This document shows, one piece after another, positions 44,491 through 62,598 of a stretch of 64,000 nucleotides of DNA. The translations under genes were made by a program, and so were the position numbers. The stretch lies in sequence record MW822008.1. One strand, 5' to 3'. Within the stretch, counting starts at the first letter, position 1, and the number at the start of each line of letters is the position of its first letter. The notes below the pieces were generated by a model. That model was given only the letters and a program-made list of their open reading frames with translations, searched no databases and had not been told where the DNA came from.

Positions 44491-44541
44491 TTTTGGGCGT
44501 AACTATGCACCCGGTGGGCTTGAGTCTTTCTCGACTTGATG
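44491..44541 (-). ncRNA. putative short RNA unit (CCCANNGGGUGC family), copy 1
   Basis: TTGCTT/TATAAT promoter on - strand, hairpin AGUC-GAGAAA-GACU, CCCACCGGGUGC, no ORF. Confidence 0.45.
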
Positions 44542-44644
44542 GAACTATTATACAGTACTGAAAAAATAAAGCAATACCCTGGAAGCAAAAAAGTTTTAAT
44601 TAATTTGCTTGCTATCCTGGGCCGGACTATGGTACTATATTTCA

Positions 44645-44696
44645 GTACTGAGAAAGTGCGTTTACCTGCTAGGGTGCGGGAGTGTATCCTTTTTTT
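44645..44696 (+). ncRNA. putative short RNA unit, copy 2
   Basis: GUACU-GAGAA-AGUGC, CCUGCUAGGGUGC, 3' hairpin plus U7 tract. Confidence 0.45.
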
Positions 44697-44706
44697 ATAT
44701 CTTGAA

Positions 44707-44756
44707 TTTTGGGCGTAATTTCGCACCCTCTGGGGTTTCCGCTTTCTCGCGTCTAT
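44707..44756 (-). ncRNA. putative short RNA unit, copy 3
   Basis: TTGACT/TATAAT, CGC-GAGAAA-GCG, CCCAGAGGGUGC; convergent with copy 2. Confidence 0.45.
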
Positions 44757-45166
44757 GTAGTAATTATACGCTTTTTCAGGATCAAGTCAATACCTAAAAA
44801 CAAAATAATTGAAAATAATTTAACGCGTTTAAACGGCCCGTAAAGCCCTGGAATGATTGGAATGGTGCAAATGTATAGCTTATGTGTATTAATGCGTTAG
44901 AATGCGTCTGAGGCCGTTTTACGGGGTATGGGGATGATTTGGTGGATTGATTCAGTACTGAATAATAGTACTACTATATAGAAAGATAGTTCCCCTGGAT
45001 GGTTGCAGTACTGAATGATAGTACTGAATAATAGTTCCCCTATATAGAAAGAAAACTATTTTAAAAGTATTTGTAGAAAGTACTTGCAAACTAAGTTTAA
45101 CGGCGTATAATGTTTTACATCGAGAGCGGGAACACTTCCCGCTACATATTACGAGAGATTAAAACG

Positions 45167-45529
45167 ATGGCGACTCAAATCACTAAAATTATTGCTAACC
45201 TGGTTAACTTTCGCGACGAGATGAAAGATCTTCCGGCAGAAACGGTAAAAATTCACATTTCAGCTTATCGGGAACTTATTGCAATGTTACCGCTTAAGCG
45301 TGAACAATACGCCGCGACCGTGATGCTTGATGCGATGATCCATAAGATGATCGCCAGTGATTTAACGATGGTTTATCAGTATATGGGCGAAAATTTCGCG
45401 GTGTATAGTAAACCAGTACCAGGAATGGAAAGTACAGAAGTATTACACGGTTTAAATTTAAAACAAGATGCATGGGATAATATGCCTCGTTTCCTGGTAT
45501 GGGCTGACAGTGGCAAAATTTACGAATAA
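45167..45529 (+). CDS. early hypothetical protein
   Basis: own promoter; true start ATG 45167. Confidence 0.75.
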   Translation: MATQITKIIANLVNFRDEMKDLPAETVKIHISAYRELIAMLPLKREQYAATVMLDAMIHKMIASDLTMVYQYMGENFAVYSKPVPGMESTEVLHGLNLKQDAWDNMPRFLVWADSGKIYE

Positions 45530-45623
45530 GTTTAATAAAGTACTTGCAAACTAAGTTTAAAAGCGTATAATACTTTACATCAGGTGGGGAATAGTTCCCC
45601 ACTATAATTAAGAGATTAATTTT

Positions 45624-45857
45624 ATGAGTACTATTTTAACTGTTTCTCAATCCGTTGCACTGACTGACCTATTAAACGCTTTAAGCCGTTGCACTGAGGT
45701 TGGCTTGTTTGATGTGGTTGACGTTGCACCGGACGTTATTAATCATTTTTGTGATGCGATGGAAGAATGTAAGGAAGATGATAGCCGTATGATGGCGGTC
45801 GCCTTTGAGGAAGTACAGCCGGGTGAGATCAAAGGTTTACCAGTACTGAAAAAATAG
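45624..45857 (+). CDS. early hypothetical protein
   Basis: own promoter, acidic. Confidence 0.75.
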   Translation: MSTILTVSQSVALTDLLNALSRCTEVGLFDVVDVAPDVINHFCDAMEECKEDDSRMMAVAFEEVQPGEIKGLPVLKK

Positions 45858-45939
45858 TACTTGCAAACTAAGTTTAAAAGCGTATAATACTTTCTATCAG
45901 GTGGTGAATAGTTCCCCACTATATAAGAGGATTAAAAAA

Positions 45940-46179
45940 ATGGCTAAATCAAAAATGTTCTTAGGTCACAAAAACAAAACTCATTGGAATGTAAGCCTTT
46001 GGATTAATAACGATGAGTCATTGTACCGGTTGGCCCAGGACTTTATTAATGATAGCACTAATCGCAATGATGCGGCCCGTCATATGATGCTATTTTTAGA
46101 ACAGACTGGACAAGATAAAACACCGGACGGATTCAAATATAGCACTACTGCGATCCGTGCGGCGATGGTTGGAATGTAA
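45940..46179 (+). CDS. early protein, GHKN..WNVSLWINN family
   Basis: paralogue of 47980; GAGG RBS. Confidence 0.8.
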   Translation: MAKSKMFLGHKNKTHWNVSLWINNDESLYRLAQDFINDSTNRNDAARHMMLFLEQTGQDKTPDGFKYSTTAIRAAMVGM

Positions 46180-46265
46180 TAGAATTTATTTAAAGTACTA
46201 TCATTTTTTTGCGATAGTACTTTATAATAGTGTTTTATTCATACACCAACGATAAGGGTAACAGC

Positions 46266-46532
46266 ATGAATATTAAGTATTTTGCGACGCGTGAACAAGC
46301 TCGGATCGCCGCACGCCAGGACGGGGCAACGTTTAAAGATATGGGAGCGGGATCGGCAAGTGGTGAACGTTGGGCCATTGTAAAGCGTAGTACCGCCAGA
46401 TCATTACAGTACTGGTTAGCGGCGTTAAAAAGTCCCGATAGTGTATCGCGTCGAGTGGTAGAAATAAAGCTCGACCGAAAGGGCAACCGCGTGACCGTGT
46501 ACCGTACTAAAAAGATTGCAGTACTTGAATAA
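46266..46532 (+). CDS. early protein, ATRE.AR family
   Basis: paralogue of 58638. Confidence 0.75.
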   Translation: MNIKYFATREQARIAARQDGATFKDMGAGSASGERWAIVKRSTARSLQYWLAALKSPDSVSRRVVEIKLDRKGNRVTVYRTKKIAVLE

Positions 46533-46619
46533 AAAGTACTTGCAAACTATGTTTAATGGCGTATAATGTTTTACATCGAGAGCGGGAACACTTCCCGCCT
46601 ATAACCTGGAGTAATAAAA

Positions 46620-46850
46620 ATGACTAATATGTATATGACTGAAGTTAAAACCGTAAAAGATACTACCACGAATAAAACTACTTACTTACAGCGGATCTGC
46701 GGTGTATGGCAACGTATCAGCAAATCAAAGTACTTTAAATTAACATCATATGCAAACCGTTCGGATTCATTCAGTACTGAAATAAAAGGTAATAAAGTAC
46801 ACCAATACGGCACTTATTATTATTATAGCCTGGACGCGATTGCAGTATAA
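46620..46850 (+). CDS. early hypothetical protein
   Basis: GGAG RBS, own promoter. Confidence 0.75.
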   Translation: MTNMYMTEVKTVKDTTTNKTTYLQRICGVWQRISKSKYFKLTSYANRSDSFSTEIKGNKVHQYGTYYYYSLDAIAV

Positions 46851-46914
46851 GCAGTTTACAAATCTTTACAATTGCCGGTATTGACTTATTTTGTCAGTAC
46901 TGGCATAATGTATT

Positions 46915-46960
46915 CATTGGCAGATAAGCCGTAGCCCATAGGGTGCGGGAGTGTATCTAT
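46915..46960 (+). ncRNA. putative short RNA unit, copy 4
   Basis: TTGACT-17-CATAAT, GGC-AGAUAA-GCC, CCCAUAGGGUGC. Confidence 0.45.
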
Positions 46961-46977
46961 AGAAAAAGTAGTTTATT

Positions 46978-47019
46978 ACAGTTACAATTGTGCACCCGGT
47001 GGGTTAGCTGTTGTCATGG
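46978..47019 (-). ncRNA. putative short RNA unit, copy 5
   Basis: TTGACA-17-CATAAT on - strand, CCCACCGGGUGCA; convergent with copy 4. Confidence 0.45.
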
Positions 47020-47133
47020 GGTATATTATGCCAGTACTTGATAATGCTGTCAATACTTTTTTTACTATTCAGTACTGAAAACTATTTTTAAAAAGTACTT
47101 GCAAACTATGTTTAAAGGCGTATAATGTTTTAC

Positions 47134-47208
47134 ATCAGGACGGGGAACGAAATAAGTAACTCCCCGTTAAGTAGCCCAGGAGTAAGGCACACGAAAAACT
47201 CCCCTGAT
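47134..47208 (+). ncRNA. putative 75-nt structured RNA (three-way junction), copy A
   Basis: AUCAGG/CCUGAU closing stem, ACGGGGA/UCCCCGU, GGAGU/ACUCC; between tandem promoters. Confidence 0.5.
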
Positions 47209-47276
47209 AAAATAGTTTGACAAATGTTTTTAAAAGCGTATAATACTTACATCAACTACTGAATGAGGGTTACAAA

Positions 47277-47888
47277 ATGAAAACTATCACTACTACTACT
47301 TTCGTTATGGATTTTTCTGAATTGAACGCAGAACAAAAAACGTCAGCTATCGAACTGGTTCGGGAACGTGAAAAAAACTTAAACGATGATTATTTTTCTG
47401 AAAGTGAAATTGAATACTATAAAGAAACAGTACTACCGGAATATGGCATTAATGACGCTGATTTACGTTTCAGTGGCTTTTGGTCCCAGGGTGACGGTGC
47501 ATCAATCAGTACTGACCACGTTGACGCAGTGAAGTTTTTACGCAAGGTAAGAGCATTAACTAAGTATCGCTCAATCCGTCACTTGCTGAATGAAGATGAT
47601 TTGGCGATGAGTGTAAAGCGTTCTCACTCCCACTACTCGCATGAAAACACTGTAAGCGGGTACATTGAATCGGCTTACACTGATTTAACCGCAAAACAAG
47701 AAACGTTAGTTAATGAGCTTGAGGAACTACTCACTGAAACTATTCGTGAATTATCCCGCAAGTTGTACCGTGATTTAGAGAATGCATATGAGGATCAATT
47801 CACTACTGAAAACATTACGGCACTGATTGAGGGTAACGAATATCAATTCAATGTTATTGATGGCGTAGTAGAATCAATCGAATATTAA
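47277..47888 (+). CDS. conserved mobile-element early protein (FSGFWSQGDGA motif)
   Basis: motif seen directly; function unknown. Confidence 0.75.
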   Translation: MKTITTTTFVMDFSELNAEQKTSAIELVREREKNLNDDYFSESEIEYYKETVLPEYGINDADLRFSGFWSQGDGASISTDHVDAVKFLRKVRALTKYRSIRHLLNEDDLAMSVKRSHSHYSHENTVSGYIESAYTDLTAKQETLVNELEELLTETIRELSRKLYRDLENAYEDQFTTENITALIEGNEYQFNVIDGVVESIEY

Positions 47889-47979
47889 TTTAAAAAAGTA
47901 CTTGCAAACTAAGTTTAAAAGCGTATAATACTTTATATCGAGGCGGGGAGTGGTTCCCCGCTCAAACGAGGATTTAAAA

Positions 47980-48219
47980 ATGGCTAGTTCTAAAACTTAC
48001 AACGGGCACAAAAACAAAACTCAATGGAATGTAAGCCTTTGGATTAATAACGGTGAGTCATTGTATCGGCTTGCACAAAGTTGTATCGCACAAAGTAGAA
48101 CTAAAGATATTGCAGCGGAATGTATGTACCGCAGATTAAAAGCCAACGGTACTACTACAACGCCGGACGGTTTTAAGTATAGCACTACTGCGATCCGTGC
48201 TGCAATGGTTGGAATGTAA
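47980..48219 (+). CDS. early protein, GHKN..WNVSLWINN family
   Basis: paralogue of 45940. Confidence 0.8.
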   Translation: MASSKTYNGHKNKTQWNVSLWINNGESLYRLAQSCIAQSRTKDIAAECMYRRLKANGTTTTPDGFKYSTTAIRAAMVGM

Positions 48220-48276
48220 TATTCAGTACTGAGATAATGGCGGGTAATAGTTCCCGCCTTTACTGAGGGTTATCTA

Positions 48277-48537
48277 ATGAGTAAAGTAATAAAGTACAAT
48301 GTGTTAAGCAAATCATTGTCTATCAGTGAATGCACCGATGGTTTTTGGATGTACGATGAAACGCGTGGCATGAATTTAGCTATGCGTGCAAAAACTGCTG
48401 AGGCGGCGTATATTCAAGCACTGGAATACTACCAGGAACGTTTAAAGGAAGTAGAAGAAGATTATAAAAGCCTCAAAGCGAAAGTAGATCATTTCGTCGG
48501 TCAATTCATCGAGGAAGACGACGACAAACAATATTGA
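48277..48537 (+). CDS. conserved phage hypothetical protein
   Basis: GFWMYDETRGMNLAMRAKT, coiled-coil tail. Confidence 0.75.
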   Translation: MSKVIKYNVLSKSLSISECTDGFWMYDETRGMNLAMRAKTAEAAYIQALEYYQERLKEVEEDYKSLKAKVDHFVGQFIEEDDDKQY

Positions 48538-48623
48538 AAAAGTACTTGCAATTAGTTTTCAGTACTGTATAATGGTTTACATCAAAGGGAGAAATGGTTC
48601 TCCCTGGTAATGAGGAAAATAAA

Positions 48624-48845
48624 ATGGCTAATATCACTACTCTTTCCCAACTGGAAGCACTGGTTAAATCTATGCGGGAACATGCCGACAAAATCGGCGT
48701 ACAAGATCCAGCCGTTTGCTTCTGCGACGAATTGAATGATGATACCCTGGTAATAGCAGAAGTCCAGGACGTTTCTAACTATTCATCGCGTTACACTGGC
48801 GGCGTAGCAAATAAAGGTGACTTCTGTTTATACCTTACAAAATAA
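48624..48845 (+). CDS. early hypothetical protein
   Basis: GAGG RBS before 48624. Confidence 0.75.
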   Translation: MANITTLSQLEALVKSMREHADKIGVQDPAVCFCDELNDDTLVIAEVQDVSNYSSRYTGGVANKGDFCLYLTK

Positions 48846-48902
48846 CAACGCGGGGAGATAATAACTCCCCGTTACTTTTTCAGTACTGAATCATTTAATA
48901 GA

Positions 48903-48946
48903 CGGATCTATGCACCCGGTGGGTTAGTGACTGTTTCGTCTTGATG
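48903..48946 (-). ncRNA. putative short RNA unit, copy 6
   Basis: TTGACA-17-CATAAT on - strand, GAC-GAAACA-GUC, CCCACCGGGUGCA. Confidence 0.45.
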
Positions 48947-49088
48947 TAGTAATTATGCCAGTACTGGATGCACTTGTCAACAACTATTTTTCAAATACTT
49001 TTTATTAAAATACTTGCAATTAGTTTTTAAACGCGTATAATGTTTTGCATAGGGGGAGCGGTTCCCCTGGTAACTAAGGAATAATAAA

Positions 49089-49325
49089 ATGCTTGAACAA
49101 ATCAAATCAACGTCTTCGAATGTAACGGGAACGGTAGCACACTTTACTAGTGATGAATCGCGGGGCGTTCCCTATTGTGCTGTACATGTAAACACTGAGG
49201 GTAACTACTGGTTTACGGTTTACGGATCATATTCATTTGGACGGCCAGGGCATCAAAAAATTCTGGATAAAGTACAACCAACGGGTAAAAATATCACTGC
49301 TGAAATGTTTTATAAAAAATCATAA
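49089..49325 (+). CDS. early hypothetical protein
   Basis: AAGGA RBS, own promoter. Confidence 0.75.
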   Translation: MLEQIKSTSSNVTGTVAHFTSDESRGVPYCAVHVNTEGNYWFTVYGSYSFGRPGHQKILDKVQPTGKNITAEMFYKKS

Positions 49326-49409
49326 AGTACTTGATAATAGTTTTTAGTACTGTATAATATTTTACATCGCAAGGGGGAGCGGTTCCCCCTGGTAACTAAG
49401 GATAATCAA

Positions 49410-49709
49410 ATGAAAATTGCAATCATCGCCCTGGCTTTATCTGTTTCCTCTTTCGCTGTTAATGCGTCATTAGATGTAAGTAGTGAAAAATTCATTCAGT
49501 GCACTGTTGCAATGACCGATGAAAGTACTGGCGAGATTGTTTTAAAGGATTTAGAGATCCAGCCGGAAGCATTTAAAAACGGGCCGTTCCATGAAGAAGA
49601 CGAAAAAGGTAGCACGACAATTTATTACGATGCAAGTACTAAACGCGGTTCGGTCACTGTTATGGATACTGAGAAAGTAACTCATACTGGCGTTATTAAT
49701 TGCCGTTGA
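49410..49709 (+). CDS. early secreted protein
   Basis: signal peptide, Cys pair. Confidence 0.75.
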   Translation: MKIAIIALALSVSSFAVNASLDVSSEKFIQCTVAMTDESTGEIVLKDLEIQPEAFKNGPFHEEDEKGSTTIYYDASTKRGSVTVMDTEKVTHTGVINCR

Positions 49710-49730
49710 TATATACTACGGGGTAACATC

Positions 49731-49961
49731 ATGACTAAGCGAATTGTTTTACTTAACGAAAGCAGTACTACACAACTACTTAACGCCGTGCATTATGATA
49801 TTGAAACGAGCGTTAATCTTATCAGTACTGTAGTACTGTTGGACACTGGAAAGGTCGCCAATGATAAAGCGATTGCAGGTATACTAACGGATCTTGAGCC
49901 TGGTAGCAGTGCATCAATAACGTTAAATGGTAAAGTGTTTAACATTTTACTTACTGATTAA
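49731..49961 (+). CDS. early hypothetical protein
   Basis: followed by terminator AGCCCAC-CTG-GTGGGCT-T7. Confidence 0.7.
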   Translation: MTKRIVLLNESSTTQLLNAVHYDIETSVNLISTVVLLDTGKVANDKAIAGILTDLEPGSSASITLNGKVFNILLTD

Positions 49962-50078
49962 GTACATAGCCCACCTGGTGGGCTTTTTTGTTTTTGTAGT
50001 ATCGTAGTACTGAGATACTTTGAAAATAGTTTTAAAAAAGTAGTTGACATTACCGCAGAAAAGCGTAGAATGTATTAC

Positions 50079-50151
50079 ATCAAGACGGGGAGCACTAAGT
50101 AGACCGCCAGTAAGTCGAACGAAAAACTGGACACGTCGAGAAAACTTTGAT
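50079..50151 (+). ncRNA. putative structured RNA, divergent copy C
   Basis: CCAGU/ACUGG replaces GGAGU/ACUCC around the same 14-nt AAG..ACGAAAA loop. Confidence 0.45.
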
Positions 50152-50194
50152 ACACTAATAAACGTAAACTAAACTTTAATTGAGGATTTATAAA

Positions 50195-50677
50195 ATGGCT
50201 AATGTAAAATCATTCATCAAAGCACTGGTAGCAAATGAAACTAACGTCGCGGCTGAGATCCTGGCTGAACTGGATAACGATACCATGAAAGCGGTACGCA
50301 ATAATTTTAACATCGCGTACAGTACTGCGAAAGAACTACAAGCAAATAAAGCGGCAGAAATTGAAGCGGCAAAGGCGGCCCGTGAAGCAGAACTACAAGC
50401 AACAATCGAAAGTATTCAGGCGGCAGTAGTTGGATTGGATCTGGAAGTAGTTACAGAGATGGCACAAAAAGCCCTGGCGGTTAAGTATGGGGAAGACAAG
50501 CCAGAAGTAAAAGCCAAAAAATGGATTCAGGAACGCGTAGCGGTAGTACTGGACAACGGGGAAGAATATCTGATTCCGGTGCGTGGTAACTGCATTGCGG
50601 TAGTACTGGACGCGATTAACTCCAGTGGTATGACTCGCGAGGAATGGATCGAAGCTCATCGCAAAGTTGAAGCATAA
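50195..50677 (+). CDS. H-NS-like nucleoid protein
   Basis: coiled-coil AAEIE region and C-domain DNGE....RGN.IAVV.DA...SG.T.EEW aligns with H-NS DENGE...[11 protein letters not shown]...GKSLDDF. Confidence 0.6.
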   Translation: MANVKSFIKALVANETNVAAEILAELDNDTMKAVRNNFNIAYSTAKELQANKAAEIEAAKAAREAELQATIESIQAAVVGLDLEVVTEMAQKALAVKYGEDKPEVKAKKWIQERVAVVLDNGEEYLIPVRGNCIAVVLDAINSSGMTREEWIEAHRKVEA

Positions 50678-50698
50678 CAATTAAAGTACTGAATCACT

Positions 50699-50724
50699 AG
50701 CCCACTTATACAGTGGGCTTTTTT
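50699..50724 (+). terminator. intrinsic terminator
   Basis: AGCCCACT-tatac-AGTGGGCT-T5. Confidence 0.8.
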
Positions 50725-50743
50725 GTGTTTATCGTTTACCAGG

Positions 50744-50813
50744 CCACCAGCACCGCCTAGAAACGATTCTAACGCATTAAACTGATTATCTGATGCATCA
50801 CCCTAGCTGGTGG
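50744..50813. other. inverted pair of Chi sites
   Basis: CCACCAGC 50744, GCTGGTGG 50806, intergenic. Confidence 0.7.
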
Positions 50814-50961
50814 CGTTAAGGTCGTTAGAATGCGATTGAGTGCGTTTAAAGTATTTTACAAAAAGTAATAAAAAGTACTTGCACGATTAAGAGATTAGCG
50901 TATAATGTTTTACATCGAGAGGGGGAAACGGTTCTCCTTCCAAATCAAAGGAATCAAAACA

Positions 50962-51189
50962 ATGGCTATTATCATTACTCGCGTATCTGGTACTACTGGC
51001 AACGAACAAGTAGTTGCAGTCATTACCAACAAGGAAGGTGCGGAATTGCAAAATGCAATGAATACCTGGGCCGTTAATGAGTTCGGTCAGTGGGCAAGTG
51101 TAGCATACATTGAAACCTATCAAGTGCCGTCGATTAGTTTAACTGATTTGGGCGTTGAGCGTATCCTTTGCCTTGATGAATTAAATTAA
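50962..51189 (+). CDS. early hypothetical protein
   Basis: AAGGA RBS before 50962. Confidence 0.75.
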   Translation: MAIIITRVSGTTGNEQVVAVITNKEGAELQNAMNTWAVNEFGQWASVAYIETYQVPSISLTDLGVERILCLDELN

Positions 51190-52474: not shown

Positions 52475-52525
52475 TCAAAACATCGTTAGCGGTCGTTTAA
52501 GGCCGCTTATATTGGGGATTATACC

Positions 52526-53669: not shown

Positions 53670-53679
53670 ATGAAAAAAG

Positions 53680-53711
53680 TGGTTGACTTCGGTCAGCCAT
53701 TTTGCTATTAT
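53680..53711 (+). promoter_or_regulatory. fused terminator / sigma70 promoter driving RNA unit
   Basis: TGGTTGAC-TTCG-GTCAGCCA; TTGACT-17-TATTAT. Confidence 0.75.
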
Positions 53712-53716
53712 ATATT

Positions 53717-53762
53717 CATTGAGAGATAGCTCACTAGCCCACCGGGTGCATAAGTGTATCTA
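53717..53762 (+). ncRNA. putative short RNA unit, copy 7
   Basis: UGAG-AGAUAG-CUCA, CCCACCGGGUGCA-UAAG-UGUAUCU. Confidence 0.45.
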
Positions 53763-53883
53763 TTATATAAGTATTGAGTACTGAGAACTATTTTTAAAAA
53801 GTACTTGCAAACTATCTCAATTGGCGTATAATGTTTTACATCGAGAGGGGGAACGGTTTCCCCTGGTAATAAGGAAACGAATC

Positions 53884-55338: not shown

Positions 55339-55376
55339 TCTATTGACAATATCCTCCAGTACTGGCATAATACTTA

Positions 55377-55424
55377 CATCAAGACGAGAACGTCACTAAC
55401 CCATAGGGTGCACAAATGTAACTG
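55377..55424 (+). ncRNA. putative short RNA unit, copy 8
   Basis: TTGACA-17-CATAAT, GACG-AGAA-CGUC, CCCAUAGGGUGCA. Confidence 0.45.
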
Positions 55425-55669
55425 TATAATATTGATCAAAAAATGATCTGATCAATACTTGATCAATTTGCGTAAAGTAGTATAATTCTATGCAGTTGGT
55501 TAGACGAAAGGTTATGATTAGTAGTGCAAGTGTATAAAAATTTTCATGGTGTATCGTTCCGCACATATGGCAATGAATATGTGGTATCATGTGGATTGGA
55601 AAAAGTAAGAACAAGTAATATTATTGTCGCATTACAGTACTATAGTATTTTTATAATGAGGTTAAAATA

Positions 55670-55927
55670 ATGGCTGTAGGATTCGCGAAAGATGGGGCCG
55701 AACAAGACGAGATTAACGCAGTGATTCAGGCCGCCGTTAACCACGCTAGAAAGCAAATTAACGCACAAATAGAATCACTGATACATTGCCTCGACTGCGG
55801 CGATATAATCCCTGAGAAACGACGCCAGGCCGTTAAGGGATGTAAGTACTGCATAACTTGCCAGGAGGATCATGATAGTACTTTTAAACGTCCCCCGCGT
55901 AATTGTTGGCATAGATCTATGAGATAA
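55670..55927 (+). CDS. TraR/DksA C4-type zinc-finger protein (YbiI-like)
   Basis: MAVGFAKDG..QD N-terminus; CLDCG..IPE.RR.AV.GC.YC..CQ. Confidence 0.85.
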   Translation: MAVGFAKDGAEQDEINAVIQAAVNHARKQINAQIESLIHCLDCGDIIPEKRRQAVKGCKYCITCQEDHDSTFKRPPRNCWHRSMR

Positions 55928-56002: not shown

Positions 56003-56197
56003 ATGAAAATGGAAAACTTATCAAGTATTTTAGTACAAGATGATTTCGGTAATCCTGGAAGTGCTATCATTGTTCGGGGTAATAAAGCAACATTTGTTAT
56101 TGCTGGTGGACCTGTACAGCGTAGCATTAAAAACAATGCCGTTACTATTAATAATGTACGCTATCGCTTAGATAAAGAATTGATTCATAAACTGTAA
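56003..56197 (+). CDS. early hypothetical protein
   Basis: own promoter; contains Chi at 56102. Confidence 0.7.
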   Translation: MKMENLSSILVQDDFGNPGSAIIVRGNKATFVIAGGPVQRSIKNNAVTINNVRYRLDKELIHKL

Positions 56198-56224
56198 TAT
56201 TAATTTAATAGAGGATAACAATAA

Positions 56225-56548
56225 ATGTACATTCATACTACTATCACAAAGGAAGTCCGTTGCCAGTTCGAAAGTATTCCGGGCGTATGTTTCATCACTG
56301 GTACGTTTTCCCCTGGTGATCGTGATAATCCAGTACTGTTACAATTACGCCATCCATCATGGGATAAAGCATTTGATCTACCGTTGAATGAATTCGCAAC
56401 TACTGCTGAAAAGTACATTAAAAATATTCGCGAGAATGATCGACTATTCATTAATGCTTTCAGTGATTCCGCGTTAAGCGAGATCCACAGCGTATTGGTT
56501 GCAATCATGGAATCAATGGAGAAAACTAAATTCAAACAAGGTGAATAA
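56225..56548 (+). CDS. early hypothetical protein
   Basis: GAGGA RBS. Confidence 0.75.
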   Translation: MYIHTTITKEVRCQFESIPGVCFITGTFSPGDRDNPVLLQLRHPSWDKAFDLPLNEFATTAEKYIKNIRENDRLFINAFSDSALSEIHSVLVAIMESMEKTKFKQGE

Positions 56549-56631
56549 AAACTATTGACAAGATAATCTAGTACTGTATAATAAGTTACATGAAGGGGAG
56601 AAATGATTCTCCCCACTGAGAGGAAAGAAAA

Positions 56632-56844
56632 ATGCAAGGTCAACTAATCGTTCGTAAATGGTCTGATACTAACGCTAAACCGTGGGATGTACAATACATC
56701 GGACCGGATGGGGTATCACGTTATCAGCCTGGCGTAACGCATAGTACTGAGCAATATGCCGCCGCTCACCGCGAACGCCTGTTAGAATCCATGAAACAGG
56801 GATACGGTGAAAAATTCATTCAAGATCATTGGCTGAAAGATTAA
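56632..56844 (+). CDS. early hypothetical protein
   Basis: own promoter, GAGGA RBS. Confidence 0.75.
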   Translation: MQGQLIVRKWSDTNAKPWDVQYIGPDGVSRYQPGVTHSTEQYAAAHRERLLESMKQGYGEKFIQDHWLKD

Positions 56845-56861
56845 TATAAGGAGTACAGCTT

Positions 56862-56954
56862 ATGCAAATGAATCCGATGATTATTGTGTTAGCTGTACTT
56901 ATGATCATTCATGCAATAGTAAAAGTATTAACGCAATCAGGAGTAATAAAATGA
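56862..56954 (+). CDS. 30-aa TM peptide (not in track)
   Basis: AAGGAG RBS. Confidence 0.55.
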   Translation: MQMNPMIIVLAVLMIIHAIVKVLTQSGVIK

Positions 56955-57124
56955 TTCAAGTAGAATTATCAGTACTGAAAGATCTGTTTTATCGGTTAGG
57001 TACTACTGGCGAGTATCCTAAAAGTGATACCGCAAAACTTTTTGTATCACTCGACTTATGGCAACGCGAACAATTAGTAATGTCCTGGCGTAAAGGTAAA
57101 GCAGATAGCGAGGTGAAAGCATGA
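56951..57124 (+). CDS. 57-aa protein (not in track)
   Basis: AGGAG RBS, ATGA overlap. Confidence 0.6.
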   Translation: MIQVELSVLKDLFYRLGTTGEYPKSDTAKLFVSLDLWQREQLVMSWRKGKADSEVKA

Positions 57125-57270
57125 AAGAATTCTTATTCGAAGTAGTGTTTCAAGGTGTCGGTAGTAACCAACTGATTCGCTCAAGTGGTTATAATGTTAA
57201 CCAGGCATGGAATAACATTAAACAAATGTACCCGAACGCTATCACCTATCGCAACCCGAAAGAAGTTTAA
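57121..57270 (+). CDS. 49-aa protein (not in track)
   Basis: GAGGTG RBS, ATGA overlap. Confidence 0.6.
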   Translation: MKEFLFEVVFQGVGSNQLIRSSGYNVNQAWNNIKQMYPNAITYRNPKEV

Positions 57271-57283
57271 AAATATTTGAAAA

Positions 57284-57317
57284 AGGGATTGACTCCGGTC
57301 AGTCCCTTTGCTATTAT
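57284..57317 (+). promoter_or_regulatory. fused terminator / sigma70 promoter driving RNA unit
   Basis: GGGATTGAC-TCCG-GTCAGTCCC; TTGACT-17-TATTAT. Confidence 0.75.
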
Positions 57318-57322
57318 ATACG

Positions 57323-57363
57323 CATAGAAACAAATCAGCCCACAGGGTGCATAAATGTATCTA
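57323..57363 (+). ncRNA. putative short RNA unit, copy 9
   Basis: AGAAA, CCCACAGGGUGCA-UAAA-UGUAUCU; Chi at 57370 follows. Confidence 0.45.
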
Positions 57364-57443
57364 TTGTTTGCTGGTGGCTAGTACTGAAAACTATTTTTAA
57401 AAAAGTACTTGCATTGTACTTAGAATCAAGTATAATGTTTTAC

Positions 57444-57516
57444 ATCAGGACGGGGAACGAAACAAGTAACCCCGTTAAGTAGTCCAGGAGTAAGACATAA
57501 GAAAACCTCCCCTGAT
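57444..57516 (+). ncRNA. putative structured RNA, copy B
   Basis: same three stems as 47134-47208 with loop substitutions. Confidence 0.5.
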
Positions 57517-57585
57517 AAAATAGTTTGACAATAGAAAGTAAACGAGTATAATACTTACATCAACCACTGATAAGGAAACATTAAA

Positions 57586-57861
57586 ATGCGGATTCTACTG
57601 ACAGCTAACGAAATCGAACAAGTACTGACTACTAACCTGGAAGACTGGAAACGTGAAGCAGATATCCAGGCGGTTCAACTGCTTAACGATAAGTTAACGC
57701 CGGATGACTTAAGCAAGATTGTAGATCCTCAATTCTACGAAGATATCCACGACACCGCGTTAAGCGTCGAGGATGTACTAGATAAGCACTACATTGATAT
57801 TGATTTGCAGGTTTACGGTCGTAAAAACTTTATCACTATTCACGACATTTATAATAATTAA
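57586..57861 (+). CDS. acidic early protein
   Basis: AAGGA RBS. Confidence 0.75.
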   Translation: MRILLTANEIEQVLTTNLEDWKREADIQAVQLLNDKLTPDDLSKIVDPQFYEDIHDTALSVEDVLDKHYIDIDLQVYGRKNFITIHDIYNN

Positions 57862-57947
57862 GTATTGACAAAGTATCTTAGTACTGTATAATAGTTTACA
57901 TCGAGAGGGGGAATGGTTCCCCTCCTAACAAAGAGAGAGAAATAAAA

Positions 57948-58130
57948 ATGGCTAAATGCACTATCTGCAAGAAAGAAATAGTATTAGTTCCAAGTGCCCG
58001 TGAACGTGCCGCTCGGTTCGGTGGCAAAGCGTCAGACTATACAAAAATGTTTACTACCCATGCAGCTTGCCAGGTAGCAAAACGTTCACAAGAAAGCGTA
58101 GAATTAATGCGTAAACTTTCCAAAAAATAA
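57948..58130 (+). CDS. Zn-finger-like early protein
   Basis: CTIC...HAAC. Confidence 0.7.
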   Translation: MAKCTICKKEIVLVPSARERAARFGGKASDYTKMFTTHAACQVAKRSQESVELMRKLSKK

Positions 58131-58218
58131 GTATTGACAAAGTATCTTAGTACTGTATAATAGTTTACATCAAGTGAGGGGAAACGGTTCCCCTCCTAAC
58201 AAAGAGAGAGAAATAAAA

Positions 58219-58542
58219 ATGGCTATGATCCTTGCCCAGAAAGTAGAACTGAAAATTGTAACCTCCTTTGACATTAAAGTTAATCGGTGGACTGATTCAC
58301 ACGGCAATACTTACCACTCTTGCTACGTGTCCGCGTTAATTGGCGACCGCTGGGAAGACTTGGGACATGAAACCTTTACTTACGGTTACGGTACACAAGG
58401 AGAATACACGGGCTTGGAGATCATTAAAGAAACCGTTATAGGTTTCAACCCGAAAGAAAAAGTTATTCACCGCATCGAAAAAGAGATTAACAAAGAAATA
58501 ACAGTTCGCTACTACGATGTAAAACGTAAGAAAGACATGTAA
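58219..58542 (+). CDS. early protein, RWTDS.GNTYHS family
   Basis: paralogue of 51801. Confidence 0.8.
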   Translation: MAMILAQKVELKIVTSFDIKVNRWTDSHGNTYHSCYVSALIGDRWEDLGHETFTYGYGTQGEYTGLEIIKETVIGFNPKEKVIHRIEKEINKEITVRYYDVKRKKDM

Positions 58543-58637
58543 TAGAATCCATTTAAAGTACTATTTGACATTGCCCAGATAGTACTTTATAATAGACTCT
58601 AACTTGTAGTACTAACTCAACTAATAGGATGTATACC

Positions 58638-59033
58638 ATGATTACTAAATTCTACGCTACCCGTGAAGCTGCCCGTATTGTTGCACGCGAGGAAGGAGCA
58701 GCATTTAAAGACATGGGCAAAGATGCACCGAAAGGTCAACGCTGGGCCGTACAGTTCAAAGAAATCTCTGATATTGTGAATTCACCTGAGCCAGTACTAA
58801 CAGCAGCAGAACTAAAACGAGCGGATTTACTGGCGGCAGTACTTAACGCACAAGATGAATTTATCGCTGATTCTGATATCAAAGTACAGACAAACCATAC
58901 CGCTTGGACTCACGCGGATCACCTGGCAAACCTTAAGCGTCCAAGTGAACTGGTTCGCAACCAGAAAGAGATCCGACACGACCGTAAGGGTAATCGTGTA
59001 ACAGTATACAGTAAACGCCGCCAGGTTATCTAA
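58638..59033 (+). CDS. early protein, ATRE.AR family with internal insertion
   Basis: paralogue of 46266. Confidence 0.75.
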   Translation: MITKFYATREAARIVAREEGAAFKDMGKDAPKGQRWAVQFKEISDIVNSPEPVLTAAELKRADLLAAVLNAQDEFIADSDIKVQTNHTAWTHADHLANLKRPSELVRNQKEIRHDRKGNRVTVYSKRRQVI

Positions 59034-59095
59034 TAACTTGCAGTACTAACAACACGGCGGGATCAGTTCCCGCCTTTTTTATAGGATAAACTAAA

Positions 59096-59350
59096 ATGAT
59101 TAAGGTACAACTATCTAAAGATAATATCTTGCGGGTACACTATAAAGCACCACAGAGAATCATCACAAAGGCCGTACAGCTTGCTAATGAGTTTATTAAT
59201 GGTAACCTATTACCAAGGAAGTTAAGCAACGGAAAACTGCGTGTAATCGATGTAGACACTAACAACAGAATAGTAATTGAGAACACAGGAAAGATAAACC
59301 TATATGAACACCAACAATATAATAAGAAAATAAAACTAATATCACGTTGA
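59096..59350 (+). CDS. ParE/RelE-like toxin-fold protein
   Basis: RKL...LRVIDV...RI...LYEHQQYNK resembles the ParE-like HE.YN motif. Confidence 0.45.
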   Translation: MIKVQLSKDNILRVHYKAPQRIITKAVQLANEFINGNLLPRKLSNGKLRVIDVDTNNRIVIENTGKINLYEHQQYNKKIKLISR

Positions 59351-59403
59351 CAGTACTCAATTGTTTTAGTATTATGTACACATACCAACACGGGAGAAAC
59401 AAA

Positions 59404-59622
59404 ATGAAATTATCTAAAATCGAAAAGAAAACTATTGATGAAGCAGTTAAGCACGGTTATACCTTTCGTAATGATTCACATTTTACCAATTTTCAACAAG
59501 GCCAAAGGACTATTAAAAAACTAATTGACAAAGGTTTATTAGTTAAAGTAGATAACGGTAACGGCATTGAGTATCAGCCAACCCAAGACGCATTATCTTT
59601 AAAGAAATATGCAATTATCTAA
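59404..59622 (+). CDS. early hypothetical protein (possible winged helix)
   Basis: TIKKLIDKGLLVK; own promoter. Confidence 0.65.
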   Translation: MKLSKIEKKTIDEAVKHGYTFRNDSHFTNFQQGQRTIKKLIDKGLLVKVDNGNGIEYQPTQDALSLKKYAII

Positions 59623-59679
59623 TTGACAGTACTCAAATGTTTTAGTACTATATGTACATACCAACACGGGGAAAACAAA

Positions 59680-59922
59680 ATGATTACTTTAGAAAAACGT
59701 ATCAAAGAAACTACATCGCTGGTGGAACTGTTAACAGTACTGAAATGCCGTACTACTCGGTTTAGTACACCGGACTTTATTAATATGGTTGATGTTAACG
59801 GTCGTTATCGCATTGCAGTAGAACATGGAACAGCGAAAGTATTCAGTACTAAAAACACTAAGGAAGTGATTCACGCGGTTAGTGTGAAAAAAGTGGTTGC
59901 CATTGATAGTAAAGTACTGTAA
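59680..59922 (+). CDS. early hypothetical protein
   Basis: promoter duplicated from 59347; Chi at 59718. Confidence 0.7.
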   Translation: MITLEKRIKETTSLVELLTVLKCRTTRFSTPDFINMVDVNGRYRIAVEHGTAKVFSTKNTKEVIHAVSVKKVVAIDSKVL

Positions 59923-59953
59923 GATAGTTTCATTAACTCAAGGAGAACATGCA

Positions 59954-60538
59954 ATGCGTAATTATACTAAATTCATCCGTACCCTGTCAGAAATGGAAAC
60001 CAACAAAGAGATCCTTTCAGCTTGTCGGTTAGCTGGTCTGGAGATCATCGGTGCGGGTTCTTCCCGTATTGTATTCGCTTTAAATGATCGGTTAGTGATT
60101 AAGGTCGCCAATTGTGATGCGGGTGTAGAACAAAATGAAACTGAATGTAAGGTATGGAATTTTTTAGACTATGACCGCCCTCAATTGAAACAGTACTTTG
60201 CAAAGGTGCATATGCATTTATGCGATCCTGATAATATGTTTATCGTTATGGATCGGTTGAGTACTGCAAGCAAAGGCAGTGTAAAGCACGTTAACGCGTG
60301 CAACGAATTAAAGTACAATATTAAACGTAATGCCATTGAACGCCAGCACCGCTTTGCTGATGCACTACAACACGTCGATGATACATTATCAACACTAACG
60401 ATAAGAGATATCAGAAAACAGAATATCGGCCAGGATCGTAATGGACTTATTAAAGTACTTGATTACGGTTTAACCCGCAATATCTGGAATCAGTACTATA
60501 AAAAGCGTGATGTGGCAGCAAGTAAAGTAACACGATAA
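59954..60538 (+). CDS. Ser/Thr protein-kinase-like protein
   Basis: IIGAGSSRIVF, VIKVA, QNETE, DIRKQNIG, KVLDYGL. Confidence 0.75.
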   Translation: MRNYTKFIRTLSEMETNKEILSACRLAGLEIIGAGSSRIVFALNDRLVIKVANCDAGVEQNETECKVWNFLDYDRPQLKQYFAKVHMHLCDPDNMFIVMDRLSTASKGSVKHVNACNELKYNIKRNAIERQHRFADALQHVDDTLSTLTIRDIRKQNIGQDRNGLIKVLDYGLTRNIWNQYYKKRDVAASKVTR

Positions 60539-60552
60539 AAAAGATTAAAAAA

Positions 60553-60585
60553 GGGATTGATTTCGGTCAGTCCCTTTGCTATTAT
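60553..60585 (+). promoter_or_regulatory. fused terminator / sigma70 promoter driving RNA unit
   Basis: GGGATTGAT-TTCG-GTCAGTCCC; TTGATT-17-TATTAT. Confidence 0.7.
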
Positions 60586-60590
60586 ATATT

Positions 60591-60636
60591 CATTGAGAGA
60601 TAGCTCACTGACCCACAGGGTGCATAAATGTATCTA
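60591..60636 (+). ncRNA. putative short RNA unit, copy 10
   Basis: near-duplicate of copy 7; CCCACAGGGUGCA. Confidence 0.45.
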
Positions 60637-60761
60637 TTATATAAGTATTCAGTACTGAAAACTATTTTTAAAAAGTACTTGCATTGTACTTAGAATCAAG
60701 TATAATGTTTTATATCGAGAGGGGGGGAACGGTTCTCCCTCAAAGAATAAGGAATAAAATC

Positions 60762-60983
60762 ATGACTACAATGACTTGCATTTACGCTTCCAATCTTCTG
60801 AATGATGCGGCCTTTAATGTTGATTCAGAATATCAATGTTATCGGGATGAAAATAAAAAAGTTTTTGTAGTTGATAATAATGGTTTCCATATTGAAATAC
60901 AATCCGGCTTCACTGGTGTTGATGGTAAATCAGTATGGGGCGTACAGGATGATAACGGTACATATCATTTTAAACGTAATTAA
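60762..60983 (+). CDS. early hypothetical protein
   Basis: AAGGA RBS before 60762. Confidence 0.75.
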   Translation: MTTMTCIYASNLLNDAAFNVDSEYQCYRDENKKVFVVDNNGFHIEIQSGFTGVDGKSVWGVQDDNGTYHFKRN

Positions 60984-61067
60984 GTATTGACAAAGTATCT
61001 TAGTACTGTATAATAGTTTACATCAAGGGGAGAATAGTTCTCCCCGATACTAAAAGGAAACAAAATT

Positions 61068-61340
61068 ATGTCCAGCTACTCCGCTACTATGATCATTAAA
61101 GATATGAACGGTAATCCTACTTCCGCTGGTGGATCATTTGGAAACATTAATTTAGATGGTCGGTTATCCATGCAATCAGCCATCGATGCAGCGAAAGAAG
61201 TTTTTAAGAATGAATGCACTGTAAGCAAGCTGGATTATATGGGATTCGCTATCGAGAAAACTAATCGTTTTGTGAACTACAAAAATCCACTGATGATTGA
61301 TACTAACCTGAAAGCTAACGAAGTGGAATACTTATTATGA
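61068..61340 (+). CDS. early hypothetical protein
   Basis: own promoter; Chi at 61125. Confidence 0.75.
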   Translation: MSSYSATMIIKDMNGNPTSAGGSFGNINLDGRLSMQSAIDAAKEVFKNECTVSKLDYMGFAIEKTNRFVNYKNPLMIDTNLKANEVEYLL

Positions 61341-61528
61341 CAGTTGAAGAAGTTAAAAAAGTACTGGCAGTACTACGCTATCATAATCATTGCAAGGTGA
61401 AGAATGATCCTGATTATGTTGATTCATCCCTGGAGGAAGACACATTAAACGCAATAAGCCATATGCAAACATTAGCAAAGCGTATGACCGAAAAGAATAG
61501 ACCGGACTATATCGGAAATAAAATTTAA
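61337..61528 (+). CDS. early hypothetical protein
   Basis: ATGA coupling. Confidence 0.7.
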   Translation: MTVEEVKKVLAVLRYHNHCKVKNDPDYVDSSLEEDTLNAISHMQTLAKRMTEKNRPDYIGNKI

Positions 61529-61614
61529 AAAGTACTTGCATTGTAGTTAGATTAACGTATAATGTTTTACATAGAGCGGGGGAATAGTTCTCCCGCCAGT
61601 CCAGGAGATACACC

Positions 61615-61878
61615 ATGAACACTATCGAAATCACTATCAATGCACACGTATACGACAACGTAGTACTGCAAACTACTATGACCGCTAACGATACCAGTAC
61701 TTTGCGGAATACTGTTATTAGTGCCGTATGTGCCGCTATCGGTGATGTCGCCCTGGAAAATGCAAAACACGTAAACGATGGTTTCACTATGTGCAAACGT
61801 GATAACGCAAAACATATCATCGTGGAAGGTTACGGCGGTGTAGAATTTAATGTTTATATGAAAAAAGTACTTGCATAA
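61615..61878 (+). CDS. early hypothetical protein
   Basis: AGGAG RBS. Confidence 0.75.
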   Translation: MNTIEITINAHVYDNVVLQTTMTANDTSTLRNTVISAVCAAIGDVALENAKHVNDGFTMCKRDNAKHIIVEGYGGVEFNVYMKKVLA

Positions 61879-61945
61879 TAACTAAAACAAAGTATAATGT
61901 TTTGCATAGGGGGAGATGTCCTCCCCCACTAAAAGGAGTAATAAA

Positions 61946-62170
61946 ATGGCTAACTTTGATGAACTGATGCGGGAAGTAGCTAACCTGGCAGAAGAGAAAA
62001 AATCATTCGATTCTATCTATAACACCTCTTACCGTGATTCAGTACTGGCATGTAACCAGGATCAAAAAGATGAACTAATCGCCACCTATCATGAAGCATG
62101 GAAGTACTACCGACAATGGGAGAAAGAAGAAAGAGAGTCTACCATTGACGGCCTCAATAATCTAATCTAA
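61946..62170 (+). CDS. early acidic protein
   Basis: AAGGAG RBS before 61946. Confidence 0.75.
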   Translation: MANFDELMREVANLAEEKKSFDSIYNTSYRDSVLACNQDQKDELIATYHEAWKYYRQWEKEERESTIDGLNNLI

Positions 62171-62246
62171 AAGTTTTATTTCAGTACTATTGACATAGCT
62201 TGATAGTACTGATGTAATAACTTTACTAACTACAAGGGGAAACATC

Positions 62247-62504
62247 ATGGAACAATTCACACAATATCGGGTAAATCCTCAAGCTATGGCCTACGTAGAA
62301 GACCATAAAACGTTACCAGTACTGCAACCAGTTAAAGGCCATATCTATCGTGCAATGTCGTGGAGTACGGCCCAGGATGGCTATAAAACCGTAGCCGTTG
62401 GTATGTACTGCGGTAATGGTGAATGGTTTGATCCAAATAATCCGGTAGCCATTGACAGTACTGAAAAAATGAAATGGGCCGACTACATCGAAGATATTTC
62501 ATAA
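62247..62504 (+). CDS. early hypothetical protein
   Basis: own promoter. Confidence 0.75.
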   Translation: MEQFTQYRVNPQAMAYVEDHKTLPVLQPVKGHIYRAMSWSTAQDGYKTVAVGMYCGNGEWFDPNNPVAIDSTEKMKWADYIEDIS

Positions 62505-62519
62505 AAAGAATAAAAAAAA

Positions 62520-62552
62520 GGAGTTGACTTCGGTCCGCTCCTTTAGTACTAT
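62520..62552 (+). promoter_or_regulatory. fused terminator / sigma70 promoter driving RNA unit
   Basis: GGAGTTGAC-TTCG-GTCCGCTCC; TTGACT-17-TACTAT. Confidence 0.7.
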
Positions 62553-62557
62553 ATACG

Positions 62558-62598
62558 CATAGAAACAAATCAGCCCACAGGGTGCATAAGTGTATCCA
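62558..62598 (+). ncRNA. putative short RNA unit, copy 11
   Basis: near-duplicate of copy 9; Chi at 62632 follows. Confidence 0.45.

Follow-up and report, generated by a model that had tools for sequence, protein, structure and literature searches.

The 64,000-nt stretch of record MW822008.1 analysed here (the window) comes from Escherichia phage BF17, an Asteriusvirus and a 121Q/PBECO4/RaK2-like jumbo myovirus. The match to BF17 is 100% identical over window positions 44000–48000, and window positions equal MW822008 record positions plus 43410. Between 44491 and 62598 the window carries eleven short promoter-driven, gene-less units that specify a conserved RNA of ~45 bases. Judged by sequence comparison, these units are a real RNA element, with a structure that has good comparative support and for which we found no description in the literature. 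The element is shown to be deeply conserved, coupled to a promoter and restricted to the direct terminal repeat (DTR) of these phages. Our favoured reading, to which we give a probability of about 0.35, is that the units are autonomous immediate-early small-RNA genes acting in trans.

The core of the unit, CCCANNGGGTGC, is present in ten exact copies, all between 44507 and 62585, and the eleventh copy has the variant core CCTGCTAGGGTGC at 44665. Chance would give about one match in the whole window, even with one mismatch allowed. The eleven copies, their positions and their strands are those listed in a first-pass annotation made from the DNA letters alone, including the four minus-strand copies and the two convergent pairs. 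The unit RNA starts with (U/A)CA(U/A) and consists of a 5′ hairpin (P1), a short linker, the core and a 3′ strand, in this order. P1 has 3–5 bp and a purine-rich loop of 6–7 nt (GCGAAA, GAGAAA, AGAUAA, AGAACAA). The P1 stem is missing in ~15% of units, which have a GAAAACAA-like sequence instead; copies 5, 9 and 11 of the window, already annotated as stemless, belong here. The linker is UAA, UAG or UGA in 59 of 79 distinct sequences. The 12-nt core reads R-CCC-loop-GGGUGC, with CCC and GGGUG essentially invariant and the loop either 3 nt (ACA, AUA, ACC and others) or 4 nt long (UAUA and others). It is followed by six nucleotides of consensus NNARNU and then by the 3′ strand, NYRYCY. The G run of the core is predicted to pair either with the upstream CCC (P2) or with YRYCY of the 3′ strand (P3). 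The latter pairing, proposed earlier between GGGUGC and a downstream GUAUCU or CGCCC, holds.

To compare units between phages, the DTRs of nine relatives were fetched and searched with a profile hidden Markov model and then with a covariance model built from 17 ungapped seeds. This search of related jumbo phages, suggested in the first-pass annotation, gives 83 units in eight loci: 10 in the window, 9 in Muenster, 7 in XbC2, 10 in fENko-Kae01, 12 each in Serratia phage BF and CBB, 13 in GAP32 and 10 in 7t3. The variant unit 2 of the window is missed by the model. Unit positions are given as 50-nt frames, and the model-guided alignment (A3) is evaluated on 79 distinct sequences.

P1 is supported by compensatory change. 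All four of its pairs have many double changes and 95.7% of cells in the alignment are paired, while sliding the partner by one to three columns lowers pairing to 33–49%. The same four pairs are the four highest mutual-information column pairs of the alignment, and no pseudoknot or other long-range pair emerges by this measure. The earlier observation that the 5′ stems of the window differ in sequence and still pair extends to the family. P3 is supported in another way. Its 3′ strand shows 91 transitions against 11 transversions, compared with 244 against 227 in unpaired variable columns; the nominal Fisher p is 2e-13, which is not exact because the sequences are related. Pairing of this strand with GGGUG is kept in 90.5% of cells (G·U or G-C, U-A or U·G), and more than half of the pairs are wobble pairs. 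P3 is therefore possible only on the sense strand; it could form neither in an antisense RNA nor as a cruciform. Within the P3 loop, U59 is kept in 72 of 79 sequences between variable neighbours. At the level of sequence comparison, these compensatory and constrained changes show that selection acts on RNA structure in P1 and P3.

P2 (CCC:GGG) hardly varies and for this reason is untestable by covariation. Its support comes from a loop whose length varies between fixed CCC and GGG, from one CCU/AGG double change, which is the palindromic core variant seen in the first-pass annotation, and from a flanking position that is purine-only opposite U. These features fit a hairpin better than a spaced site in duplex DNA. 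P2 and P3 share the G run and therefore cannot both form. Their predicted median energies are similar, about −4.0 kcal/mol for P2 and −3.7 kcal/mol for P3, with P3 favoured over P2 in 39 of 79 sequences. The conservation profile of BF17, vB_Ec-M-J and 121Q around the units defines no 3′ boundary because the three genomes are too similar.

Each unit of the window sits in fixed register behind a promoter of the type TTGAC-16/17-TATAAT, begins at the transcription start and contains no open reading frame, as first annotated for near-consensus σ70 promoters. In the family, 73 of 83 members have a promoter that matches at least 9 of 12 positions, and in 56 of these 73 the −10 hexamer ends exactly 4 nt ahead of the frame. 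No coding sequence lies on any unit in the deposited annotations of BF17, vB_Ec-M-J and 121Q. Coding potential was also considered and rejected: only mechanical reading frames run over units 1–3, and indels between copies break any shared frame. In the DTR part of the window, 45 sites resemble promoters at 10 or more of 12 positions. At the other DTR promoters the same start-site context is followed by a different 5′ hairpin (GGGGAGA-nnnn-TTCTCCCC), ACUAA, a ribosome-binding site and ATG. The shared start context and 5′ hairpin layout mean that the units use the cassette design of gene leaders, and the eleven units are this design with an RNA payload replacing the gene. Because the gene-leading promoters carry an analogous 5′ hairpin, P1 may by analogy be a generic 5′ stabiliser and not the specific part of the RNA. 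Genes downstream of units each have a second promoter of their own, in agreement with the first-pass annotation. At units 7, 9 and 10 the promoter lies within a GC hairpin that has a T run after it, and these composite hairpins contain the −35 hexamer of the next promoter (AAAGGGATTGACTCCGGTCAGTCCCTTT).

The units belong to the terminal repeat. In the close relative vB_Ec-M-J the DTR is annotated at positions 1–21525, and the 20,993-bp repeat of fEgEco12 is supported by PhageTerm and restriction digests (PMC13070987); the region 44491–62598 therefore lies wholly within a DTR of ~21 kb. Small plus-strand genes stand 80–300 nt apart in the DTR, and beyond the repeat genes are tightly packed. No unit is found in window positions 1–43410 or in the 18.5 kb to the right of the vB_Ec-M-J repeat. 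BLAST with single units finds them in all Asteriusvirus records and, with 67–94% identity, in phages of Klebsiella, Salmonella, Cronobacter, Pectobacterium, Erwinia, Serratia and Xanthomonas. Unit 3, for example, is 84–94% identical over 33–77 nt in Xanthomonas, Erwinia, Salmonella and Klebsiella relatives, and its counterpart lies ~1.07 kb into five records whose first base is at the left genome end or close to it. Each DTR has 7–13 units, and a further set of twelve is present in Erwinia phage pEa_SNUABM_12. The P1 stems and the P3 loop drift between genera, but the core module stays invariant in Asterius-, Alcyoneus-, Mimas- and Eneladusvirus and in unclassified relatives. A strict 28-nt pattern searched over IMG/VR matches solely RaK2-like jumbo contigs, and the matches map to the DTR (all of them in complete 121Q and GAP32, all placeable ones in CBB and RaK2). 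In 596 Gb of bacterial genomes, where ~35 chance matches were estimated, the same pattern has 10 scattered matches in unrelated metagenome bins, none of them enterobacterial, and mimicry of a host sequence was rejected. The location in the DTR, the DTR-confined conservation across genera, the exclusivity of P2 and P3 and the analogous hairpin of gene leaders were all absent from the first-pass annotation.

Solitary units make up 55 of the 83, with 42 on the plus and 13 on the minus strand; the other 28 are arranged as 14 convergent pairs. Neither the 13 solitary minus-strand units nor the 14 minus-strand pair members, about a third, lead into a sense gene. A gap of exactly 13 nt separates the 50-nt frames of 10 of the 14 pairs, in four genera and with differing spacer sequences. 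The gap is likewise 13 nt for units 2 and 3 of the window, a pair outside this model-based list. The other four pairs have a gap of 24–35 nt that holds a palindrome (e.g. GAGAATGATAATCATTT), which we take to resemble the host Fur box. Every genus has convergent pairs at ~1.0 kb and ~3.7 kb from the left end. Solitary minus-strand units abut the terminator hairpin of upstream plus-strand genes. Solitary plus-strand units enter the A/T-rich region of the next promoter, which is 19–97 nt away where detected. A U tract follows P3 only in unit 2 of the window, which alone there resembles an intrinsic terminator (T7 after P3); the P3 of the other units is G·U-rich and followed by A/U-mixed sequence. 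Sequences of LexA-box pattern (CTGT-N8-ACAG, e.g. TACTGTACATAAAAACAGTA) stand at a constant distance, 12–14 nt after P3, in 13 of 83 units; they are confined to the comparison loci L004–L009, and the window has none.

Several of these properties lead us to favour trans-acting small-RNA genes. Units may face either way relative to genes, and a third of them lead nothing. Minus-strand units have the classic layout of a small-RNA gene, with a terminator shared with the converging gene. P1 is placed like the 5′ stabiliser on neighbouring mRNAs, and the invariant part is what many copies would deliver. Confinement to the DTR, the host-takeover region, is also counted in favour, as are the fixed promoter register and the abundant noncoding RNAs that the distant relative PA5oct makes from its DTR. 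Upon DNA entry, host σ70 RNA polymerase would fire the near-consensus unit promoters. Transcripts would start 2–4 nt upstream of P1, a hairpin that would stabilise the 5′ end, and would carry the payload R-CCC-(3–4 nt)-GGGUGC. Eleven copies per repeat and two expected repeats per packaged genome would bring the module to high concentration within minutes. There it would bind a conserved partner as a sponge or cofactor, with a host transcription, RNA-decay or translation component, or a conserved phage early protein, as candidates. Transcripts of solitary minus-strand units would end at the shared bidirectional terminator, those of convergent pairs through head-on collision or overlap, and those of plus-strand units through a roadblock or processing in the A/U-rich stretch past P3. 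Unit 6 faces such a terminator, the bidirectional GC hairpin of the upstream plus-strand genes, and its predicted discrete RNA is ~100 nt long. As stand-alone small-RNA genes, the units have a promoter and a conserved structure, and a terminator is present for units 6 and 2 and not for the other plus-strand units. We also consider, tentatively and with some doubt, a more novel reading, in which the CCC/GGGUG module is a two-state RNA switch that is produced, in over 20 copies per genome, within minutes of infection. Its role would be the capture or reprogramming of a universally conserved host machine (RNA polymerase, an RNA-decay or a translation factor being candidates), and the 13-nt pairs would be collision-defined RNA factories.

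Some observations weigh against the trans-acting reading. The exact 13-nt spacing of pairs and their conserved map positions point to a local, position-dependent role, because a diffusible RNA would not need them. Most plus-strand units have no terminator and a promoter close by, and could equally lead read-through transcripts. Folds are predicted to be only slightly more stable than those of shuffled sequence, with a mean z of −1.1 for the units and of −0.7 for their reverse complement. We found no transcriptome for these phage genera in the literature. No binding partner or base-pairing target was identified, and no sequence of the window is complementary to the core.

The local features suggest an alternative that is possible, with a smaller but real chance of being correct, in which the unit works in cis, during transcription, as a signal to RNA polymerase. 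With the enzyme at an elemental pause near +38, P2 would form in its exit channel; the polymerase would be kept there, altered by a phage or host factor that is loaded on it, or set free, and P3 would then resolve P2. The neighbouring transcription unit could in this way be antiterminated, attenuated or occluded at its promoter, or the stalled enzyme could form a barrier between operons. The fixed distance from the start site suits this, as do the strict spacing of the pairs and the operon-boundary positions, where promoters of units 7, 9 and 10 overlap the upstream terminator hairpin and plus-strand units stand in tandem a few tens of nucleotides before a gene promoter. All features found downstream stop polymerase (the convergent unit at 13 nt, the Fur-/LexA-box-like palindrome, the next promoter, the terminator). 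P2 and P3 are mutually exclusive and near-isoenergetic, as in attenuators. The consensus elemental pause is matched by the invariant GG at −11/−10 and the conserved U59 at −1, although G at +1 occurs in only 44 of 79 sequences and a match within 50 nt is not rare by chance. The hairpin of the his pause lies roughly 11 nt from the pause site, and the end of P2, 8–9 nt from the putative pause, falls short of this distance. Moreover, this signal would have no sense gene to regulate at about a third of the units, boxA and ops are absent, and 10 of 11 window units have no U tract past P3.

Free orientation and confinement to the DTR would also suit starts of transcription-activated replication or recombination of the T4 oriF/oriG or ColE1 type, which we consider unlikely. 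Here the G-rich transcript would re-anneal to the C-rich template beside A/T-rich DNA, and the resulting persistent R-loop would serve as primer for the leading strand or make the repeat accessible to strand invasion. T4-type replisomes begin early replication from host-polymerase transcripts, which offers a precedent in the T4 early origins. The DNA after the GGG cluster is strongly A/T-rich, and the leftmost three units lie 150–450 bp from an iteron-like array and a leftward promoter across it. However, iterons are present at the left cluster only, eleven origins in 20 kb would be unparalleled, and selection for self-pairing of the G run in P2 and P3 opposes hybrid formation. That the units are cassettes of the promoter-early stem-loop (PeSL) type, giving homology for the shuffling of early genes and with a functionless transcribed part, is improbable. 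Some unit promoters are indeed terminator/promoter composites with the A3G3-loop-C3T3 hairpin (PMC4122927), and paralogous units (7 and 10, 9 and 11) are near-identical including the promoter. Yet the transcribed module is invariant across genera and the promoters and surrounding genes are not, and the compensatory changes in P1 and constrained changes in P3 amount to selection on RNA structure. Such changes also argue against the core as a protein site in duplex DNA, a roadblock or operator just past the promoter, which was the alternative offered in the first-pass annotation and now seems very unlikely. CCC-N3-GGG is palindromic and Fur-/LexA-box-like operator palindromes adjoin units in relatives, but the half-site spacing varies between 3 and 4 bp, the orientation to the promoter never flips, P1 covaries, and the 3′ strand evolves under wobble-keeping, G·U-tolerant pairing that is meaningless in duplex DNA.

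The element has partial parallels among known systems. Rfam 15 gives no match at the gathering threshold in the whole window, and at E up to 5 in 43400–64000 only three weak unrelated matches, none on a unit. No published description of the element was found; the CBB and fEgEco12 genome papers and the PA5oct paper (PMC7318152) report promoters, repeats or unrelated noncoding RNAs. This agrees with the earlier impression of an undescribed family. In T4-type phages, PeSLs are repeated intergenic cassettes of terminator and promoter that flank open reading frames (PMC2839356, PMC4122927). The units resemble them in combining a near-consensus σ70 early promoter with a stem-loop or terminator in regions of small genes without known function, and the A3G3-loop-C3T3 hairpin over the −35 of units 7, 9 and 10 qualifies as a PeSL. 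However, a gene-less, structured transcript that is invariant across genera falls outside the PeSL definition.

With lambdoid nut sites the units share a promoter-proximal RNA with a short covarying hairpin and a purine-rich, possibly GNRA-like loop (GAGAAA, GCGAAA) beside a conserved linear element. In nut sites an N peptide binds boxB, a 5-bp hairpin whose loop is a GNRA-like pentaloop or the hexaloop CUAACC. Linker and core often read CUAACC, the hexaloop of phage 21 boxB (PMC12550061), but in the units this sequence is not closed by a stem. In contrast to nut, the conserved element of the units is 3′ and not 5′ of the hairpin, the loops are 6–7 nt, the hairpin is missing in ~15% of units and a third face no gene. 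No N-like protein was identified, and such proteins are not recognisable by sequence. The boxA pattern YGCTCTTWA (CGCTCTTA/TGCTCTTTA type) with one mismatch has 52 matches against 47.7 expected, and the 12-nt ops/RfaH site (GGCGGTAGNNTG) with up to two mismatches has 26 against 18.5 expected; none of either lies within a unit. Attenuators and his-type pauses are similar in their successive exclusive helices on one strand (P2, then P3), and GG-N8-U(G) fits an elemental pause. They differ in that most units lack a third (terminator) helix or U tract, there is no leader peptide and many units have no gene to regulate.

CsrB/RsmZ sponges and phage decoys (pseudo-ToxI, RNA anti-CRISPRs) likewise present many copies of a short invariant motif in a hairpin context from strong promoters, and by this analogy a decoy role during host takeover is plausible. 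Unlike sponge RNAs, the copies are separate genes and not repeats inside one RNA, and the motif is CAGGGUG and not the CsrA GGA; its resemblance to a CsrA site (CAGGAUG) was rejected, because the critical A is missing. Type III antitoxins were also rejected: the units are dispersed 0.1–5 kb apart with their own promoters, whereas pseudo-ToxI consists of tandem ~36-nt repeats, no toxin or cas gene is adjacent, and no Rfam family of any kind is matched, so that neither ToxI nor a CRISPR repeat is resembled. The first-pass annotation had proposed a small-RNA family, with pseudo-ToxI and boxB as analogies. An RNA-level, strand-specific and promoter-coupled family stands; the specific analogies are not supported, pseudo-ToxI in view of the dispersed arrangement, missing toxin gene and missing Rfam match, boxB/nut in view of the absent boxA and a conserved linear element on the 3′ side. 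The DTR of PA5oct, a distant relative, has noncoding RNAs that are abundant and highly transcribed from early infection (PMC7318152). They resemble the units in being free of genes and in lying within the long DTR of a jumbo phage from a related lineage, but are 236–451 nt long with no described family or structure, and the covariance model has no match in PA5oct record positions 7000–24000, which span both of them.

Host takeover by large virulent phages is explained almost wholly by small early proteins. The element would add a conserved RNA component, at 7–13 copies per terminal repeat, in phages that infect Escherichia, Klebsiella, Salmonella, Cronobacter, Pectobacterium, Erwinia, Serratia and Xanthomonas. 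Action in trans would point to a conserved host target; action in cis would mean that E. coli RNA polymerase obeys a promoter-proximal control signal of a new kind. The two-state switch, if true, would be the first case of a virulent phage taking over its host with a multicopy RNA device. Either way, annotators gain a defined RNA family and a marker of the pre-early region in genomes of phage-therapy candidates. The units and other features of the region are listed in the table.

Table. Units and other features in the terminal repeat of BF17 and in relatives. Positions are those of the window unless another sequence is named; L numbers denote comparison loci.
Feature	Position	Frame or RNA	Strand	Promoter	Details
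Unit 1	44491–44574	44540 to 44491	−	−35 44569–44574, −10 44547–44552	P1 AGUC/GACU; core CCCACCGGGUGC; P3 GGGUG/CGCCC; tail AAAAUUC
Unit 2	44609–44693	44644–44693	+	TTGCTA-17-TACTAT	Variant core CCUGCUAGGGUGC; terminator-like 44671–44690
Gap of convergent units 2 and 3	44694–44706				13 nt
Unit 3	44707–44790	44707–44756	−	TTGACT-16-TATAAT	P1 CGC/GCG; core CCCAGAGGGUGC; P3 GGGUG/CGCCC
Unit 4	46881–46962	46913–46962	+	TTGACT-17-CATAAT, upstream TG	P1 GGC/GCC; loop AGAUAA
Gap of convergent units 4 and 5	46963–46975				13 nt
Unit 5	46976–47053	46976–47025	−	TTGACA-17-CATAAT	GACAACAGC in place of P1 stem; P3 weakened by G/A mismatch (GUAACU)
Unit 6	48843–48980	48945 to 48896	−	TTGACA-17-CATAAT	Solitary
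Terminator facing unit 6	48850–48872				Bidirectional GC hairpin
Unit 7	53676–53765	53716–53765	+	−35 inside GC hairpin, then T run (53676–53703)	P1 UGAG/CUCA; near-identical to unit 10
Next gene promoter after unit 7	from 53805			TTGCAA	
Unit 8	55343–55427	55378–55427	+	TTGACA-17-CATAAT	P1 GACG/CGUC; loop AGAA
Unit 9	57282–57366	57317–57366	+	Within hairpin 57282–57309	AGAAACAAAUCAG in place of P1 stem; near-identical to unit 11
Chi site	57370				Just after unit 9
Unit 10	60550–60639	60590–60639	+	Within hairpin 60550–60577	P1 UGAG/CUCA
Unit 11	62524–62601	62552–62601	+	TTGACT-17-TACTAT	P1 stem absent
Chi site	62632				Downstream of unit 11
Left terminus	43411–43440				Compared with L004–L007 and L010 (1–20) and L003 (1–30)
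Inverted Chi pair	43995/44007				~590 nt from left genome end
Iteron-like array	44140–44330				0.7–0.9 kb from left end; in XbC2, L004 700–770
Leftward promoter	44449				Reads across the array
Second RNA family	47099–47216; ~57400–57524; 50044 onward			TTGCAA-16-TATAAT	Gene-less
GATC cluster	55430–55470				Right after unit 8; overlaps next promoter
DksA/TraR-like gene	55670–55927				Zinc finger, Pfam E 1.6e-10
194-aa protein gene	59954–60538				Weak protein-kinase match
Fur-box-like palindromes	L003 2414–2448; L005 1030–1060, 7306–7329; L006 1024–1054; L009 1376–1406, 7652–7675				
Core-like GCACCCAGTGGG	Muenster 18–29				No promoter

Further observations concern the same region. The palindrome AGTACT occurs 275 times in the 64 kb, against ~22 expected from base composition. 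Its density is 8–14 per 4 kb outside the DTR and 20–34 per 4 kb from ~36 kb onward, including the whole DTR, and is highest at 43400–64000. The sites lie in promoter spacers (cAGTACTGgCATAAT), just upstream of the −35 (AAAGTACTTGCA, 14 times) and 7–17 nt past most units, and could be recognised by a DNA-binding or DNA-modifying protein. Four GATC in 40 bp form a palindrome (TATTGATCA...TGATCAATA) after unit 8, upstream of a 240-nt noncoding stretch that precedes the DksA/TraR-like gene.

A second family of gene-less, promoter-driven RNAs has a 5′ hairpin ACGGGGAAC...CUCCCCGU followed by UAAGUAG...CUCCCCUGAUAAAAUAG, and ends at the −35 of the gene's own promoter. The iteron-like array is made of GGCTAGA, GACGGCTAAA and GATGGCTA repeats and is kept in Xanthomonas phage XbC2; it may be an origin or packaging signal. 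Left genome termini share a common start, TATC(T/C)NTTCCTGAAGTC in Mimas- and Eneladusvirus and ...GAAGTC in Asteriusvirus. The promoter-less core-like sequence near the Muenster terminus has no counterpart at the termini of other genomes and was set aside.

Among the ten Pfam-scanned DTR proteins are the DksA/TraR zinc-finger protein, a DUF7247 protein and the 194-aa protein, which is a kinase in the annotation of relatives; none of the ten has an RNA-binding or antiterminator domain. The DksA/TraR-type and kinase-like proteins could plausibly modify host RNA polymerase or RNases. For Chi (GCTGGTGG) the window has 17 sites where 0.57 are expected, eight of them on the DTR plus strand; together with the inverted pair near the left genome end, this suggests protection of the linear ends from RecBCD.

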